Source: Zygnema circumcarinatum SAG 698-1b (lineage: Eukaryota > Plantae > Zygnematophyceae). Taken from it: a stretch of DNA of 64,000 nucleotides. Under the pieces are notes generated by a model that saw only the letters and a list, made by a program, of their open reading frames with translations, did no database searches and was not told where the DNA came from. Location of the stretch: NCBI GenBank assembly GCA_037447605.1, contig CM074805.1:3071361-3135360 (forward strand), in the 5' to 3' direction. This document shows, in pieces, positions 26,292 through 52,098 of the stretch. Made by a program: the position numbers and the translations under genes. Position 1 is the first letter of the stretch, and each line of letters begins with the position of its first letter.

Positions 26292-26953
26292 ACTCCTTCG
26301 GGAACTATGAGCTTATTACTTTGAGGGAGAAAGACGCAAACGCATAATAGCGCACATGTTTTTTCTCGTTCAACAGGGTGGCCACCAAATTAAAAAGAAA
26401 AAAAAAAGGTGGCTCCACAAGCTTACACTGCCTTAAATATTTTCTCGACAATGGTGGTCTCCTAAACACGCAATAAGATGTGAAAGCACATCAAATAAAA
26501 CAAAAAACTATTTCAAAAAAAAAGCGAGTTAAAGCTGGCAATTTATATCGAGCTTCTGCAGAGGTCCCTCAGACTCAGCCGCTCTTCCCCTCGCTCCGCC
26601 TCCTGCTTCCCTGCCTGCCTGCCTGCCCTTGCATCAGTGCCATTGCTCCCTTCAGCTCTGGCCATGGATGCATGCATGCATGCATGCGCCATCCCCCCCC
26701 ATTGCCTGCCTGCCTGCCTGCCCCAGACCGACCCTCCCCACCTCCTGTTTGCGCGCGCTTTTGTCGTGTCTTGTCATGTACAAAGTGTACGGGTTGTACA
26801 AATTGACGGCCGGCAGAGCCACGGTTTCGTCGGCCGACAGTTTATACCGTCAACAAATCATATTACGCCACGTGGATATTTCTTGTCTGGATTTGAAACT
26901 TCATTGTGCGTATACCGTCGCAGTTTTTTCTAACGTGATTTTAACGGCGTCAA

Positions 26954-31974: not shown

Positions 31975-32070
31975 GGAAGTGGCATCGATCTCACGATGGC
32001 GAAGCCATCAAATGTACATGGACAAAATCAGCACGGGGAACCACGAGGAAGTGGTCTCAAAAGACAAAAA
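31975..32070 (+). repeat. Dispersed repeat family R, copy B
   Basis: GGAAGTGGCATCGATCTCACGATGGCGAAGCCATCAAATGTACATGGACAAAATCAGCACGGGGAACCACGAGG. Confidence 0.85.
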
Positions 32071-32147
32071 GAAAAAAAGCCAAAGAAGGCTTTCAGCACA
32101 CAACATTCGATACATGTAGACTGTCAACTGGAACGTAACTGAGCCAC

Positions 32148-32270
32148 CTCCCTCCCCTCCCTCCCTTCCCTCCCTCCCCTCCCTCCCCTCCCNNNNNNNN
32201 NNCACCCTCCCTCCCTTCCCTCCCTCCCCTCCCTCCATCCATCCCACCCTCCCTCCCTCTCCCTCCCTCC
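32148..32270. repeat. CCT-rich low-complexity tract spanning an assembly gap (10 N at 32193-32202)
   Basis: (CCCT)n on both sides of the N run. Confidence 0.9.
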
Positions 32271-32724: not shown

Positions 32725-34169
32725 TCCCTCTCCCCTCCCTCTCCCTCTCCCTCGCCCTCTCCTCGTTTTTCTCGTTTGAACTGTAGAACCTTAACTAGTG
32801 AATTTCGACAATTGCGTATAGATTTTTTTTGGTCGCTTTTGCACACCCACATTCTCGTCGGGATTCATTTCATGCCCACAGTTTTGTCGCAGTCCAGTTC
32901 AGAAGGAGGTTGCGGTAGAACGTAACGGAAGCATAGAGGCAGTCATAGGACCAGAGCCTCGCGAGCTCTTTACCGTTCGGAAGAATAACGCGAGTTCTAA
33001 GCTGTTGCACAGTACGCATCCTTTTGAAATTTGAATTTGGGCTTTGGTGACGAATACGATTAATGGTTAGAACAAGGGCGAAATGTTCGGGGTCCAAAGT
33101 TTCAATAATTATGGTGAAGGTTAATAATTATGGTTAAGGTTATGGATTAGGGATCAAAACGCAACTTTAGACTTTAGGGCTTGAGATTGGGTTAAGGCTA
33201 ACTAATAAGGGTTTGGTATATAAGGTATATGCGTAGGGTTAAGGGTTTAAGAGGGTTCGTGAGACGAGAGTTCCGGTTTTTCGTTCGTACCCTTTTGCGG
33301 TGGCCCCGCCACGGAGCAACGGAACGGACGGGAATGGAACGGTGCCACCCCCAAGCGCCACATGTAACGGAACGGCAGCGGCGAGGGCGAGGACTCGTGT
33401 CGCGGTGTTGTGCCTGAAACGAGCGATATATCGAACGTATCGCTCGCGCTGTGCGGTACGCCAATGGGGCGCCGTGGCTTTTCGTTCCTCGCACGTGCGG
33501 AATCCAACCGTCGACGCAGCTCGCCTTGGCGCTGCGGTGCTGCGTGTGACATGACAGGGCGTGACGCGCAACACCCCATCCTCGCCGTGTTGCACTTTCT
33601 CATTCGTCTTTCTCTTACTCCTTCAGTATGTGATGAATGAAAGTTAGTTTCACTAGAATGGAGTGCCAGCCAACTCTACCCAACCCATAAAAAAAAAATT
33701 ATGGAAAAATGGAAAGAAAAAGAAAAGAAGGAGAGAGGTAGACACCCCTCTCTCTACCTCTCCCCCTCCCCCGCACCTCCTCCTTCTGCTCACTCTCTCA
33801 CTCTCCGTGCAGTCTGCACTCAATTTAGGAGAGACATCCGAAGTTGCTCTTCAAGAGACCAGATTCGCACCTTCGACACGCTAGTGCCACAACACATGTT
33901 GAATCGTATGAAGAAAATGCGGAACATATCAATTACGTGAAAACCAGCCCGTCGGAAAAACCCACCGTACAAGTTAAACCTGCCGCCCCTAGAGCAAAAT
34001 ATGGGCAATCCTTCATCCCTATTGGATTCAGACACCCTCCAAACCCTCACCACTACCTCCAGACGTTCGTATCACCCAACACCCCTACCTATTCAGGAAC
34101 AGCAGAACGGCACTTATTTCTCTCAAACATCTGCTGCCCATGCCCTCTCCTTAGACCAAAACAGAGTTC

Positions 34170-35355
34170 TTAGTTCGCAATGGTCACGGCAGCACCCGCA
34201 GCGGTGTACTGGGTGGGCAGCTTGTCGAAGCCGAAACTGGGGCCGAGGTTCTGCACGGAGGCGCCCATAGTGTACGTCACCCACGCCTTGACGATCCTGG
34301 AGGTGGCGGCGTTGCCGTACGACTTGCGGGCGAACTGGAACACAATGGAGGCGATGGGGTAGGTGTTGGGTCCAGCCTTGTTCAGGATGTTGATGCCGCT
34401 GAAGTAGTTGCTGGAGAGGTTGGGAACGGGGTTGGGCAGAAGGGCGGCAAGGTCGGCTCCTTTGGCGGCGAAGATGTAGTTGCCGGCGGGGTTCAGAATG
34501 GCGGCCTGGGGAACGCCGTCAGTCACGCAGAGGCCGGTCTGGACGTATCCGATGGCGTTGGCGTTGCCCTTGATGAGGGCGAGCACGCCGTCGGACTTGG
34601 CCCCATACTGAATGAGCTTGGAGACGGAGGAGAGGGTGTTCCACGAGGCGGTGGTGGTCGCCGGCCATGCAGCGACCTTGGACTTGATCCAGGACCCCAC
34701 GACCTCGGTGGTGCCCGACTTGTCGGAGCGCGCTACGGGCACCACGGTGCCGCCGGCGCCGGCGAGGAAGTTGCTCCACGGGAGGGGCGAGTCAGAGGAG
34801 TAGATGTTGTAGACCTGCGAGCCGGTGAGCTTGAGCGCGGCGGATTTCTTGGTGCAGAAGGAGTACGTCGCCACGGTGAAGGGGATGGTGTACTTGTTGG
34901 CGCCACCAGCGTCGCCGTCCTGGGTGGTCGTGAGGGCGGCGTCGGAGAAGGCCACCTGGTAGGTCTTAAGGATGAAGTTGGCGATGCCCGTGCCGGAGCC
35001 GACATTGGCGTAGGTGCCGTAGTCAGGCTTGGCGGATCCCGCGGAGAGGATGGCCTGGGCCACATACTGCGCAGCATGGCGATAGCGGGGGTTGGGGGGG
35101 AGGGTTTAATTACGGTTCTCATCATTTGGAGGTTTGAATTAGAGAAAGAGAGGCAGCAGCAGCAGCAGCAGTAGCAGCAGCAGCAGTAGCAGCAGCAGCA
35201 GCAAGCAAGCGAGCAGAGGAAGGAGGGGTGACGGTTCAGAGTGGTACGTCCTGCACGGAGGTGGCCCCGCCGATCGCAATGGCGGCCTCGGCGGAGGAGG
35301 CGGCGGAGAGGAGGAGGACGACGGCGGCGGCGGCGAGGAGGCGGAGGGCGGCCAT
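34170..35355 (-). CDS. Secreted PstS-like (periplasmic-binding-protein fold) phosphate-binding protein, 334 aa, 2 exons (35355-35248, 35066-34170)
   Basis: Signal peptide MAALRLLAAAAVVLLLSAASSAEA, then AIAIGGATSVQD|YVAQ. PstS motifs in order: GGAT, VGSGTG, AFSDA, ARSDKSGTT, SDGV...NAIGYV, TYPIAS, GFDKLP. Phase-0 GT-AG intron at 35247-35067 containing a (CTG)n tract. Confidence 0.88.
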
Positions 35356-35998
35356 GGCTACGGCGGGCGGCGAGGGTGAGGGGACGGGCGGTAAGCAGAG
35401 GGCACTTGACTTTCGGCGCCCGCGCAGCCGCTTTGTAGCTCGCGGTGGGGCCCGCCCGCGCCACGTGGCGGCATCTCCGTGAGGGAGATTCCGAAGGATC
35501 AACAATGTCGGTGGACGCGTCGGTTTGTCGTGACACGTGGCGGTTCGGCGCTCGCCGACTGTCTTTGTTCCTGGTTTTGTCTTGAATGTAGATAGTTTAC
35601 GCCAACGAGAAGACGCCACATAGCCCTCCTCCACTCGGCGCCTCCTGAGGCAATCCGCTGTCCTATCCAACGGCTCGATTCGCGGCACGTCGGATCGTGT
35701 TCCCGTCAAAGTCGCGAAAGGCGACGAAAAGCGGATTGTAAAGCGACCGGGTGACGTGACGCGAGGCGGCACAAACACTCTGCGTGGCGTTCTATGTGTA
35801 AGCTGGCGCCGTTCAGTGCAGTGCAAGTCGGGGCTCGTGGCTAGGCGTTCCGTACAGACGGCGCGTCTCGACGCATTCCGTACGGACGGCTTGTCGCGCC
35901 GCGAAGAGTCTCTCCATCGGATCTGCTTCGTCGCGTGGCCCACACAGGTGGTACATGTTGTACAATCCGTATATGTTGTACAGTGGATACATGCTGTG

Positions 35999-36517
35999 CA
36001 GTCAACAGTCCTCATATTTTCCACCCTGTACAGTGCGTCCCCAAGGAATTCGCCCCGATTTTGCCGAAACCACCTTTTTGTACGGTAACTCTGTGTTAGC
36101 CGTAGTACCCGTACTATTCGTACCCCTAAAACCCTAAAACCCTAGAAATCCTAGAAACCGTACTAGCCGTACTAGCCGTATTAGCCGTACTTGCTGTACT
36201 AGCCGTTACGGGCTTCAGCAAAACTCACCGAATCTTCCCGCACTTGCCGCCGTAAGAGGCGCTCGCTCGTCTTTCTTCCTTCTTGGCTCCGATACGACAC
36301 GATACTGAACGATACGGTATGATACGGTACGATACGGTACGATACGGTGCGATATGGTACGGTACGATACGTACGGTCCAACATGAACACTAACATGAAC
36401 TCTAACAATACCGCCCGTCTATTGGTAACACGAACCATCTATTTGCAAAAATCAATATTTTCGCCTCATATTTGCCAAAACCACATACCATGGCGAAAAT
36501 ATGAGGACTGTTGACTG
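35999..36517. mobile_element. Tc1/mariner-like MITE (519 bp)
   Basis: Perfect 23-bp TIR CAGTCAACAGTCCTCATATTTTC ... GAAAATATGAGGACTGTTGACTG. Flanks are TG (left, presumably a mutated TA) and TA (right). Interior has CCGTAC, GATAC and AAAACCCT repeats. Confidence 0.82.
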
Positions 36518-36639: not shown

Positions 36640-36903
36640 TCGATGGGACCCCAAATTGTCTCTTGTGCTATCCGTCGTGTTGGTGGACTTCCGCCGCTCC
36701 CTCCTCGCGACGTGCCTCACACCGGTGGGTGACCTTCGCGGCTGCTTCTAGGGCTGCGTTGTTGTGCCTAGGCGTAGTTTTCCGCTCCTAGCTTTGTTTT
36801 ATTGTGTTTCGGTCCTTTGTGACCAGTCCTTCGTGGTTCCACATTTTGCCTTTGTCCATGTACATTTGATGGCCTCGCCATCGCGAGTTCAATGAAAGTT
36901 TCC
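36640..36903 (-). repeat. Dispersed repeat family R, copy C
   Basis: The reverse complement reads ...CATTGAACTCGCGATGGCGAGGCCATCAAATGTACATGGAC...GGAACCACGAAG...CTACGCCTAGGCACAACAACG...GCAGCCGCGAAGGTCACC. Confidence 0.82.
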
Positions 36904-38409: not shown

Positions 38410-38859
38410 CACAGATCGGACCATTAGACAAACCAGTCGACTGGTTGGAAACCAGTGGTTGCGGACCGAAACAACCATTCGACTGGTTGCCAACCAGTGC
38501 CGCCGGATCGAAACAACCATTCGACTGGTTGCCAACCAGTGGCATCCACTGGTTCCAAACCAGTCGACTGGTTGCCAACCAGTGGTTGCGGACCGAAACA
38601 ACCATTCGACTGGTTGCCAACCAGTGCCGCCGGATCGAAACAACCATTCGACTGGTTGCCAACCAGTGGCATCCACTGGTTCCAAACCAGTCGACTGGTT
38701 GCCAACCAGTGGTTGCGGACCGAAACAACCATTCGACTTGTTGCCAACCAGTGGATGCCACTGGTTGGCAACCAGTCGACTGGTTGCCAACCAGTAGACG
38801 TCCAACCATTGCCATCCAATGGTTGTCCGATGGTTGCCGATCCACTGGTCCGAACTGTG
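38410..38859. mobile_element. Non-autonomous DNA transposon/MITE, family 'CACAG' copy 2 (450 bp, opposite orientation to copy 1)
   Basis: TIR CACAGATCGGACCA ... TGGTCCGAACTGTG. 8-bp TSD CAAACTTC at 38402-38409 and 38860-38867. The interior is a 127-bp higher-order repeat (GCGGACC at 38461, 38588, 38715) built from ACTGGTTGCCAACCAGT palindromes. Confidence 0.92.
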
Positions 38860-48686: not shown

Positions 48687-51600
48687 ATGAGTCAGGCTAT
48701 CCAGGATGAAGGCTATTCTTTCAGAAGAGGTCGGAAGGCCTCCATTGCTAAGCTTCCGCCTGAAATCATGGCGTCTATTTTGGCGAGAATCGATTCAGTG
48801 AGAGATAGAAATTCCTGCGCCCTCGTCTGCAGAGCATGGCGGTCTTGGGAACGTGAGACACGCACTCGGCTGCATCTGAGGGGGAGTATCATTGACCTGA
48901 AAGAAATCAGAAACTCATTTCGTTCGGTAACTGATCTTGACCTAACTGACGTCAATCCCGGATGGGAAGGCTCTGAGGAAGAACTTCGCGACCTCTTCTC
49001 AACGTCTTTTCCAAATGTTCGGCGAGTGAAGGCAAATGTGTCCCCCTCGGGTCTGCAGTACGTGCGACACTGTTGGCGAGAGTTGCGAGAAGTTGTGATT
49101 GGTCACTGGGACGGTCCAGACGATTTTCTGGAAGCTCACCACGTCCGGGAGCTGCTTGAGAGCTGTCCGCATATATTCTCAGTAGACTTGTCTTGGTCTC
49201 GCAATTGCGATTTTAATAATCTGCCTAGGGAATTGGCTACTTTGGAGTATCACAATCTTAGAGCCCTTAACCTTTTAGGCGGCCCGAGTAAACTCTGGGA
49301 TGCGACTCTGGAGGGTTTAGTTGACGTCTGCCCGCGCCTCCAGGAGCTTTGCTTTTCCATTGGTGACGGCAGCGTCACAGACGCAGGGTACATACTCAAT
49401 CTTCTTTCTGTCGCTATTTGGTTTGTTGAGAATGAGACTGTGCCAGCCACATCAGCGACTTCTCTTCTTTGTTTAGAGGAACCGGCCCATGATTCTCATG
49501 TCAATTATGTCTTTTAGGAAGCTGTCTTATGATGTCACCTATGATACTTTACATGCACCTTAACCTGATGCAACTAGTTTTGACCAAGGGAGGGTGAAAG
49601 AAGTATTTGCCAAGATGCAGGTCTTATTGCAGAGATCCCAAATTTTTGGGGTTTACAAGAGCTGCAATGGGACTACTTTTTTGTTTGGCATGTGATTCGA
49701 GATTGACCAATGGGTTGCAGCAGATTCAGATTGGTATTATTTTCAAATATGTGTGTTGAGAAGCTCCTGGTTCAATTGGGCAGGTCAATTCGAGGGGACT
49801 AGGCTTTTTGGCTGATGTGAATATGTGGAGTTGCTTGGCCAGAATCGCACAGCTTGCCGGGGGATGCACCGACTTACGGCTTTTGTCCATGGAAGACATG
49901 GGGCATGATATCAACGATGAACACGATGCAACTGGGCCAATCACAGCGGCAGCTGTGATTGCTTTGGCGAAGAACTGTCCAAAGTTGCGAGCGCTGTCAT
50001 TGGTCCTTGCATTTTATGTTCGTAAAAGTGGTGCAGCTTTTGAACTACTGGGTTTTTGTTGCAAAGACCTCCAAACTTTACGCCTAGCTCGCTTTCTCGG
50101 CCTCTGTAAGCGGGAGCAGAATGAGGTGACAGGTGCTGCATTTGGTGGCAGACCAGGTAGCGGGGGATTACGGGCCAGTGAAGCTCGGAGCCTACTGGGG
50201 CTGAACAGAGGGCCTGGAGGAAGGGTGGTCGACCGAGGCCCTGAGGTTGCTCTTGGGGGTAGAATAACTGCCAACATTAGTGGGGGCGTTGTTGGAGGAG
50301 GCTCTTCCTCCTTCCCTCCCTTACTGGGAAATGCAGGTCACTGTGCAACACAAGCATCTGGCACGCTTAACAGTACAAAGGGCTGGGAAACAGTGCCATC
50401 TAAGCATCGAGGTGTGGCTATGTGTACCAGTTTGACAGACCTGGAGATGCAATCCTGCAAAGATTTGGTTGATGCGGATGTGCAGCAGATCTTGGCCGCA
50501 TGCACGCAGCTTCGACGGCTGCAGATCATGGCCAATCAGAAGCTGACATCGAAAACTCTGAATCCCCTATCATCAGGAGCAAACGGACATGGGCTGGCCC
50601 TTGAGCACCTCAGGGTTTTACAGGTGAGCGTGAGAGGCCATGTCGAGATTCATTCTCTCTATCGTCCTCGTGTGTTTATCAACGAGCAAATTTGGTTTAG
50701 GCAAACAGCTTGTCTTTGCCTCATGGCTTTTTGAATTGAGAAGTTTGAATTGTGCTATGCTCGCCAAGTGGTGGTTACAGCCTACTTTCTGAAGCTCGTA
50801 CTTCCTCCTAGAAATCATACTTGACGGCCTGGTCTCGTTCTATGTAGCTGCAGATTCTTGTATACTTCCGAATAACTTGGAAAACTTGGGGATGGGTTGG
50901 TGGGGGGGGGGGGGAGGACAGTGTGATAAAGTAGCGACAGTAAATGCATTGGAGCGACTCGGCAGTGTTAAAAATCGGATTTCCGGTCTGGAACTCACAT
51001 GCAGTTGGCTTCCAACTGATCACCCAAGCCAAATCCGTCCTCTCCCGTTGGCCAATTTCAGCTCGCTTTTGTCGCTGTACTTGCAAATGCGGGTTGGATC
51101 GTCATTGCAGCCGCTGGCTGAGTGAGTACTTGTTGTCTCCTAGTTTCAAAAAGAAAAAGTCATTAAGGAAGCTTTGGAAGTGGTTTGCACTGTAGTTTGA
51201 AGATGTCAGTCTCGCCACTCAGTCGATTTACTAGTGTTTTAGGAAATGTGATGTTTGTCCGTTTTCTGAAGGTAAAGTTTGCTGGTTGTTTTGTATGCCT
51301 CCCGGACACATTGTAACGAAGACTTGCCCTACGTGCTGAAATGTACGAAAAAGTTGGTTTTCTTCCGTCTGGATGTAAGTTAGGATGAGAAAAGGAGTCG
51401 TCGACATGGGGCTTAATAGCACTCTCAACTGAGCATTATTTGACATAAGTTAGGGGGTAGGAATCAAATCATTGCATGGCGTTGGTTGGAGTTGAGCTGA
51501 CAAAGCATGCGGGAGGCATTTGTGGAGCTGCAGAGCCGGACTTGAGACATGCACCAGTTTGAAATATTTTTATCTGACGCTGTATGGCGAAGTTGTGACG

Positions 51601-52098
51601 TATTCGCCGTGGATGACATGCGCAACAAATCTGAGCTTTCTATCTGAAATTCCTTCCCTGGAGTTCTTCTACCTTGCGATGGAGCGAGTCGGCGGTGCAA
51701 AGGATGTTGTAGATGTGTGGGAAAGAAGTTACATGAAATGGCTGCCTTGCTTGGGGCTACCGGACCTCGAGTATCACCCTCCTCCAGATCATGACGGAAT
51801 GGAGGTGGTCTCTCTGCAAGCGGCAAATTTTTTGGCAAGCTGCCCCAACTTGAGGAGGATGTCTCTTGGAGGAGTGGTAAGAGAAGAGGCAATGGTGGAG
51901 CTCCTCCGCTGCAAAACTTTAAGGGATGCTACGTTCCACCTTCCGCCAGATTGCTCGGATGTGTTCCGTCAGGATTTTTACACTACATTGACATCGCGGT
52001 CATATGCGGACCAAGTAAGGCCCATCAAGAGAAAGGTTGCATCAAGAGGCCGGCCACCTTCAAGGACACGGCGCAGCACAGGCTTGACGAAGTCGTAA
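48687..52098 (+). CDS. MAX2: MAX2/D3-like F-box LRR protein, 4 exons (48687-49387, 49843-50623, 50922-51122, 51534-52098)
   Basis: F-box LPPEIMASI...DRNSCALVC...ERETRTRLHLRG...FRSVTDLDL parallels MAX2 ERSTRSHLTIRG...FRSISHLDL. Further colinear blocks: VRKSGAAFELLG..CKDLQTLRLARFLGLC, GVAMC, VGSSLQPLAE|AGLETC, WERSYM...LEYHPPPD...VSLQAANFLASCPNLRRM...G...LLRCKTLRD, LTSRSYAD. All splice junctions keep the frame. Confidence 0.8.

Follow-up and report, generated by a model that had tools for sequence, protein, structure and literature searches.

Nuclear PstS genes are already on record in algae. In Chlamydomonas, PSTS (Cre01.g044300) shows a rise of up to 8-fold on PSR1 overexpression (PMC10413257); diatom PstS genes carry signal peptides (PMC3237598), and diatom pstS is in use as a P-stress marker (bioRxiv 2025.04.09.648040). 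In a 2024 review on how phosphate acquisition evolved among streptophytes, PstS comes up for bacteria only (PMC11528361). The DING proteins, for their part, are defined by four protruding loops, a length of about 375 residues and two conserved disulfides (PMC3004253), with the DINGGG N-terminal signature given as a criterion in PMC7922408.

Here we describe a PstS-like gene in a 64,000-nucleotide stretch of Zygnema circumcarinatum SAG 698-1b DNA (the window). An earlier note on this DNA had proposed a horizontally acquired, DING-like protein representing an undescribed phosphate-acquisition system. In its broad sense the last of these claims is overtaken by the Chlamydomonas and diatom reports just cited. 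What looks undescribed is the single-domain, anchorless, strongly basic and amplified subfamily of conjugating algae to which the gene belongs, on which our literature search returned no paper.

Gene structure and predicted export

The PstS-like gene lies on the minus strand and, as read from the sequence, starts with an ATG at 35355 and encodes 334 aa. Exon 1 (35248 to 35355; 108 nt, 36 codons) encodes the signal peptide and mature residues 1-12, Thr32 being one of them, and is followed by GT. The intron (35067 to 35247, 181 nt) is a phase-0 GT-AG intron that ends in CAG and has a CTG repeat inside, while exon 2 (34170 to 35066; 298 codons plus stop, GC3 0.89) encodes the predicted body of a two-lobed PstS fold. 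A probable 3' UTR (33689 to 34169, minus strand) is joined to the coding end on one contig of the RNA-like run X2 (record 5); 12 letters of this contig differ from the window, which makes it an allele or a paralogue.

Contigs of X2 and X8, two RNA-like runs whose type is unrecorded, break exactly at 35248 and 35066, and further letters follow past these points; over the intron, depth drops to 2 and 12, respectively, versus 19-35 alongside. This is the pattern expected from splicing. The case for a transcribed and spliced gene is strong but indirect, and the two-exon model with a canonical phase-0 intron put forward earlier stands, with exact coordinates and contig breaks at both intron edges. 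The RNA-like contigs extend upstream to 35668-35768; two G-box/ABRE-type CACGTG sites (35460 to 35540) lie upstream of the start and may be within the 5' UTR. Across the window, this motif occurs 9 times versus 0.7 expected, mostly near gene starts (positions 26867, 26985, 35460, 35532, 36934, 47899 and 56033). Neither of two overlapping open reading frames (34733-35536 and 35236-36024) matches a Pfam family. X2 and X8 also cover 32768-33700, downstream of the gene, where their common letters differ from the window and from the DNA runs; this coverage is a paralogue's long 3' end, another strain or a separate transcript.

The first 24 aa (35284 to 35355, minus strand) form a predicted cleavable signal peptide (hydropathy 2.2) with A-E-A at -3 to -1 and no lipobox Cys, leaving a mature protein of ~310 residues. 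In exon 2, no stretch of 19 residues exceeds a hydropathy of 0.87 and a membrane anchor is absent, so that the leader and the hydropathy scan agree with the export and lack of anchoring read earlier from the letters. Exon 2 has a pI of 9.4, one N-glycosylation sequon and two Cys. A disulfide between these Cys, also suggested earlier, is possible, although they are not kept as a pair across the family.

Fold, phosphate site and the DING proteins

The two exons were searched, aligned and folded separately, and the fold model is that of exon 2, without the first 12 mature residues and the Thr32 among them. Exon 2 matches the Pfam family PBP_like_2 (PF12849) at E=1.5e-15, with 58.2 bits against a gathering score of 27; on the PstS profile TIGR00975, exon 2 alone reaches 79.6 bits, under the curated cut-off of 205. 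The AlphaFold model of exon 2 (pLDDT 87) is closest to PstS, with Z of 27-29 over 274-285 residues and a Foldseek E of 3e-20 for this exon, followed by weaker matches to DING proteins (Z 23-25) and to molybdate binders (ModA, Z about 12).

At just 19-24% identity to E. coli PstS, all seven of its side-chain ligands are kept, in the order noticed earlier: T10 corresponds to Thr32, S38 to Ser60, D56 to Asp78, R135 to Arg149, D137 to Asp151, S139 to Ser153 and T141 to Thr155. By alignment to E. coli PstS, the phosphate ligand Ser60 is encoded at 34995 to 34997, Asp78, the equivalent of the residue for phosphate-versus-sulfate selectivity, at 34941 to 34943, and the motif of Arg149, Asp151, Ser153, Gly154 (G140 in E. 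coli) and Thr155 at 34710 to 34730, all on the minus strand. At the position aligned with E. coli F11, which we take to be a backbone ligand, the window protein has Ser. Taken together, sequence and model support a stand-alone protein of PstS fold that is predicted to be secreted and whose predicted phosphate site is intact.

The equivalents of D56, D137 or T141 are lost in several family members, which suggests that some of the family's proteins have moved away from phosphate binding; the window copy appears not to have done so. P0032 and P0079 (Mesotaenium), P0030, P0041 and P0062 have other residues in place of the D56 equivalent and of further ligands, and are likely non-binding or re-purposed paralogues.

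Bacterial and archaeal PstS proteins (E. coli 1ixh/2abh; cyanophage Syn19 7xg7; TIGR00975) resemble the window protein in fold, length, the seven side-chain ligands and an export signal. The window protein differs from them in its low identity (19-35%), its score below the TIGR00975 cut-off and its strongly basic character, and its gene differs from theirs in being nuclear, intron-containing, amplified and without pstCAB nearby.

With the DING proteins (PfluDING 2q9t, HPBP 2v3q), the window protein shares the superfamily fold and the phosphate site. However, the DING signature is absent from its mature start and from all retrieved relatives, and the resemblance that had been seen between the two N-termini amounts to the G-G/A-A-T phosphate loop, which is common to the whole PstS superfamily. 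Its ~310 residues, versus 373-376 in DING, leave no room for the four protruding loops; alignments to DING take 337-352 columns versus about 290 to PstS, with Z lower by 4-5; and its two Cys are not kept as a pair across the family, whereas DING has two conserved disulfides. Signature, length and loops, disulfides, and lower Z and E-values thus rule out a DING identity, and the label "DING-like" has to be dropped. The window gene leaves the DING puzzle unsolved.

A conjugating-alga subfamily and its possible role

A full HMMER scan retrieved top relatives at 30-41% identity and with E-values to 1e-43; the named ones come from Mesotaenium, Spirogloea and Closterium, and the remainder are unlabelled transcript or metagenome contigs. 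A word-based search with exon 2 had returned only prokaryotic PstS (30-35%), missing the algal kin that HMMER later caught, and a related-locus search with P0054 returned only two bacterial loci. The Closterium gene has one intron, in phase 0 and at the same codon as in the window gene, and two environmental genomic homologues carry an intron at that codon too. Since these four genes are ~30% alike and have one common intron, a long residence in the nucleus is indicated.

The traits of the single-domain subfamily, all present in the window gene, are a phase-0 intron six codons after the phosphate-loop G-G, a signal peptide and a pI above 8. The genes of Mesotaenium (ME000013S00800 and others), Spirogloea (SM000365S13725) and Closterium (CAI5530945.1) agree with the window gene in clade (SH-aLRT 99), architecture and high pI, and form near-identical paralogue pairs, the window genome likewise having close paralogues; nevertheless, their proteins are only 30-37% identical to the window protein, and some have lost ligands. 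The next relatives, from Mesostigma, Bathycoccus, Prymnesium, Aureococcus, dinoflagellates (Symbiodiniaceae) and Amorphochlora, mostly have two to four PstS domains, are acidic and end in a C-terminal membrane helix; the Paulinella PstS form is also among them. In contrast, members of the subfamily have a signal peptide and no C-terminal hydrophobic segment. A pI above 8 is found in 24 of 25 single-domain members versus none of the 21 tandem-type domains, those of freshwater Mesostigma included, in rows that are related by descent, so that a p-value on this contrast is too strong, and the median pI is 9.9 versus 5.05. The window protein and the tandem forms nonetheless share one eukaryotic clade and a eukaryotic signal peptide; the Chlamydomonas and diatom genes lie outside this direct test of kinship. 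The best Atlas shape match of the window protein is a mostly chlorophyte cluster (TM 0.83).

Two further architectures were seen among the relatives. P0075 (Logan, 1165 aa) combines two FEA1 iron-assimilation domains with one algal PstS and one somatomedin B domain, a fusion that would couple iron and phosphate capture. In Mesostigma, P0033 and P0297 string together three and four PstS domains and have a C-terminal membrane helix; the annotation treats them as two isoforms of one gene.

We consider it slightly better than an even chance (about 0.55) that the window protein is a wall-held, stand-alone phosphate trap feeding ordinary carriers and derived from an old, vertically inherited algal pstS. 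A prokaryotic pstS would have been acquired early in algal history and then passed on vertically, and the membrane anchor and second domain of other algal relatives would have been lost. The product, a soluble and presumably secreted protein of about 310 residues, would close on one inorganic phosphate ion as bacterial PstS does, and would have no ABC transporter to dock on; neither the 64-kb window, as remarked earlier, nor any of five homologue loci contains pstC, pstA or pstB. Conjugating algae have walls with abundant acidic pectin, and the net positive charge of the protein probably holds it in such a wall or in mucilage. Pi might thereby be trapped at low concentration or in pulses and released near PHT1/PTB-type carriers, and the gene may be induced by starvation.

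We favour a wall-held trap because seven of seven ligands are kept at such low identity to E. coli PstS, because the fold is closest to PstS, and because the subfamily is anchorless, with a signal peptide and a pI above 8 in nearly all members. The proposal also leans on the Chlamydomonas PSTS response and on the use of diatom pstS as a P-stress marker. Amplification into paralogues fits a bulk, stoichiometric protein, and the GC3 of 0.89-0.97 fits high expression. On the other side, no P1BS motif lies within 1.8 kb upstream of the gene, the count of this motif across the window being at chance level, and the loss of ligands in several family members also speaks against a trap. Moreover, steady-state uptake gains nothing from a free binding protein; for there to be a benefit, the protein has to buffer pulses or dock on a carrier. 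The fuller proposition of an ABC-independent, wall-bound, high-affinity trap, an ancient algal PstS that was stripped of its anchor, made cationic and amplified, and that was lost by land plants, is offered tentatively and is, as a whole, somewhat doubtful.

The intact site, the secretion signal and the amplification would also fit an extracellular phosphate sink that keeps Pi from surface bacteria, prevents calcium phosphate in the mucilage, or stores Pi in the secretory system or vacuole, and no eukaryotic docking partner is known. However, one Pi per 32 kDa of protein makes a poor store, and we regard such a sink as unlikely. The protein could also be the ligand-binding subunit of an external phosphate sensor, with a membrane receptor or carrier recognising its closed form, given that bacterial Pst also senses Pi (PMC11528361) and that the tandem relatives have a membrane helix and a short tail. 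Yet the window subfamily has lost the anchor, and its amplified genes with their strong codon bias are more in keeping with a bulk protein, which leaves a sensor subunit quite improbable. Similarly small is the chance that it is a wall or mucilage protein whose cleft now serves a different anion or some phosphorylated ligand and in which phosphate binding is a vestige. The fast divergence of the family (30-41% between members), the high pI and the replaced ligands of members such as Mesotaenium P0032 and P0079 would agree with this, but the window copy keeps the full set, the D56 and D137 equivalents among them, in an otherwise diverged protein.

Origin and residence in the host genome

The ancestry of the gene was examined in a tree of 88 rows (46 eukaryotic and 42 prokaryotic, many of them unlabelled and none of them DING), built under LG+C20+F+G4 with a quick search and left unrooted. 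The window protein falls within a 21-row single-domain clade (SH-aLRT 99), beside a second single-domain group (98), and the tandem algal forms are sister (97). A long branch parts all 46 eukaryotic from the 42 prokaryotic rows (SH-aLRT 100). In donor tests, neither cyanobacterial (p-AU 0.45) nor gammaproteobacterial (0.29) sisterhood was rejected. A small LG+G4 tree places a Bathyarchaeia-containing group next to the eukaryotes; since the mixture-model tree disagrees, we claim no donor. The eukaryotic PstS clade may be of endosymbiotic origin.

A bacterial transfer that was recent or specific to streptophytes, and independent of the other algal PstS genes, could draw on the GC3 of the gene (0.89-0.97 versus 0.44-0.59 in its neighbours) and on the constraint of streptophyte forms beside actinobacteria, which was not rejected (p-AU 0.09). 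High GC3 does not point to foreign DNA, however, since other algal homologues have it likewise (0.74-0.87, with one at 0.42). The single long branch, the rejection of separate streptophyte origins beside cyanobacterial or archaeal groups (p-AU 0.014 and 0.015), best prokaryotic matches of just 30-35% and the intron common to other algae all oppose such a transfer, which is very unlikely and largely refuted. The comparisons thus support a gene that is ultimately prokaryotic, as the earlier note held, within an old and vertically inherited algal family; the lineage-specific horizontal import that the note also proposed gives way to the intron common to conjugating algae and to the pan-algal eukaryotic clade. 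Of the alternative it had named, ordinary vertical inheritance across Viridiplantae including land plants, the part that stands is inheritance across the conjugating algae within this pan-algal clade. No land plant is among the named matches of the HMMER scan, most matches being unnamed, and loss of PstS in land plants is likely.

The stretch is present in 20 runs, which come from 8 studies and belong to one organism. Difference-free DNA contigs continue from the intron through exon 1 into the upstream region, and from the stop into the 3' flank. Gene-specific DNA contigs extend into host repeats, and their depth of 32-37 resembles that of host DNA next to the gap. DNA depth over the coding sequence is 2-4 times that of the flank and variant contigs exist, which indicates several close paralogues elsewhere in the genome. 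The neighbours are of plant type: an NFD4/nodulin-like carrier, an Obg GTPase, a HEAT-repeat PP2A subunit, an F-box protein, an AFG1 ATPase and a thiamine enzyme. That the gene is a contaminant, a misassembly or a pseudogene is scarcely credible: no contig spans the 10-N gap at 32193-32202 or joins the gene to Obg or PP2AA, with repeats on both sides, but the host-like depth, the 20 runs from 8 studies, the intact frame and the spliceosomal intron common to other algae support a genuine nuclear host gene, and the earlier note was right to set bacterial contamination aside.

Transposon capture was considered and rejected, as no terminal repeats enclose the gene; the flanking inverted match (31983-32085 and 36792-36894, 79% alike) is a dispersed, high-copy repeat. 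A MITE-like element (35999-36517) with perfect 22-nt terminal inverted repeats lies about 640 bp upstream of the start; its DNA depth is 20,000-50,000 versus 30-60 for single-copy DNA, and it contains telomere-like and 9/10-nt satellite units. A tandem array at 38429-38795, with 42-nt units, a 127-nt higher order, 98% likeness and palindromic cores, has open frames on both strands, none of them matching a Pfam family. In the F-box/LRR gene at 48687-52098, the F-box is the only domain confirmed.

The window gene is not a new gene transfer. How PstS acts in a eukaryote without PstCAB is a question that concerns the algal family as a whole, since its members serve as phosphate-stress markers without biochemistry, and a small, soluble, single-domain copy with an intact predicted site makes an easy test case. 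If the protein is indeed a wall-held phosphate trap, it would be a candidate apoplastic phosphate concentrator, a step without a known counterpart in plants, and would give the sister group of land plants a further component of phosphate acquisition, one that land plants themselves have apparently dropped.
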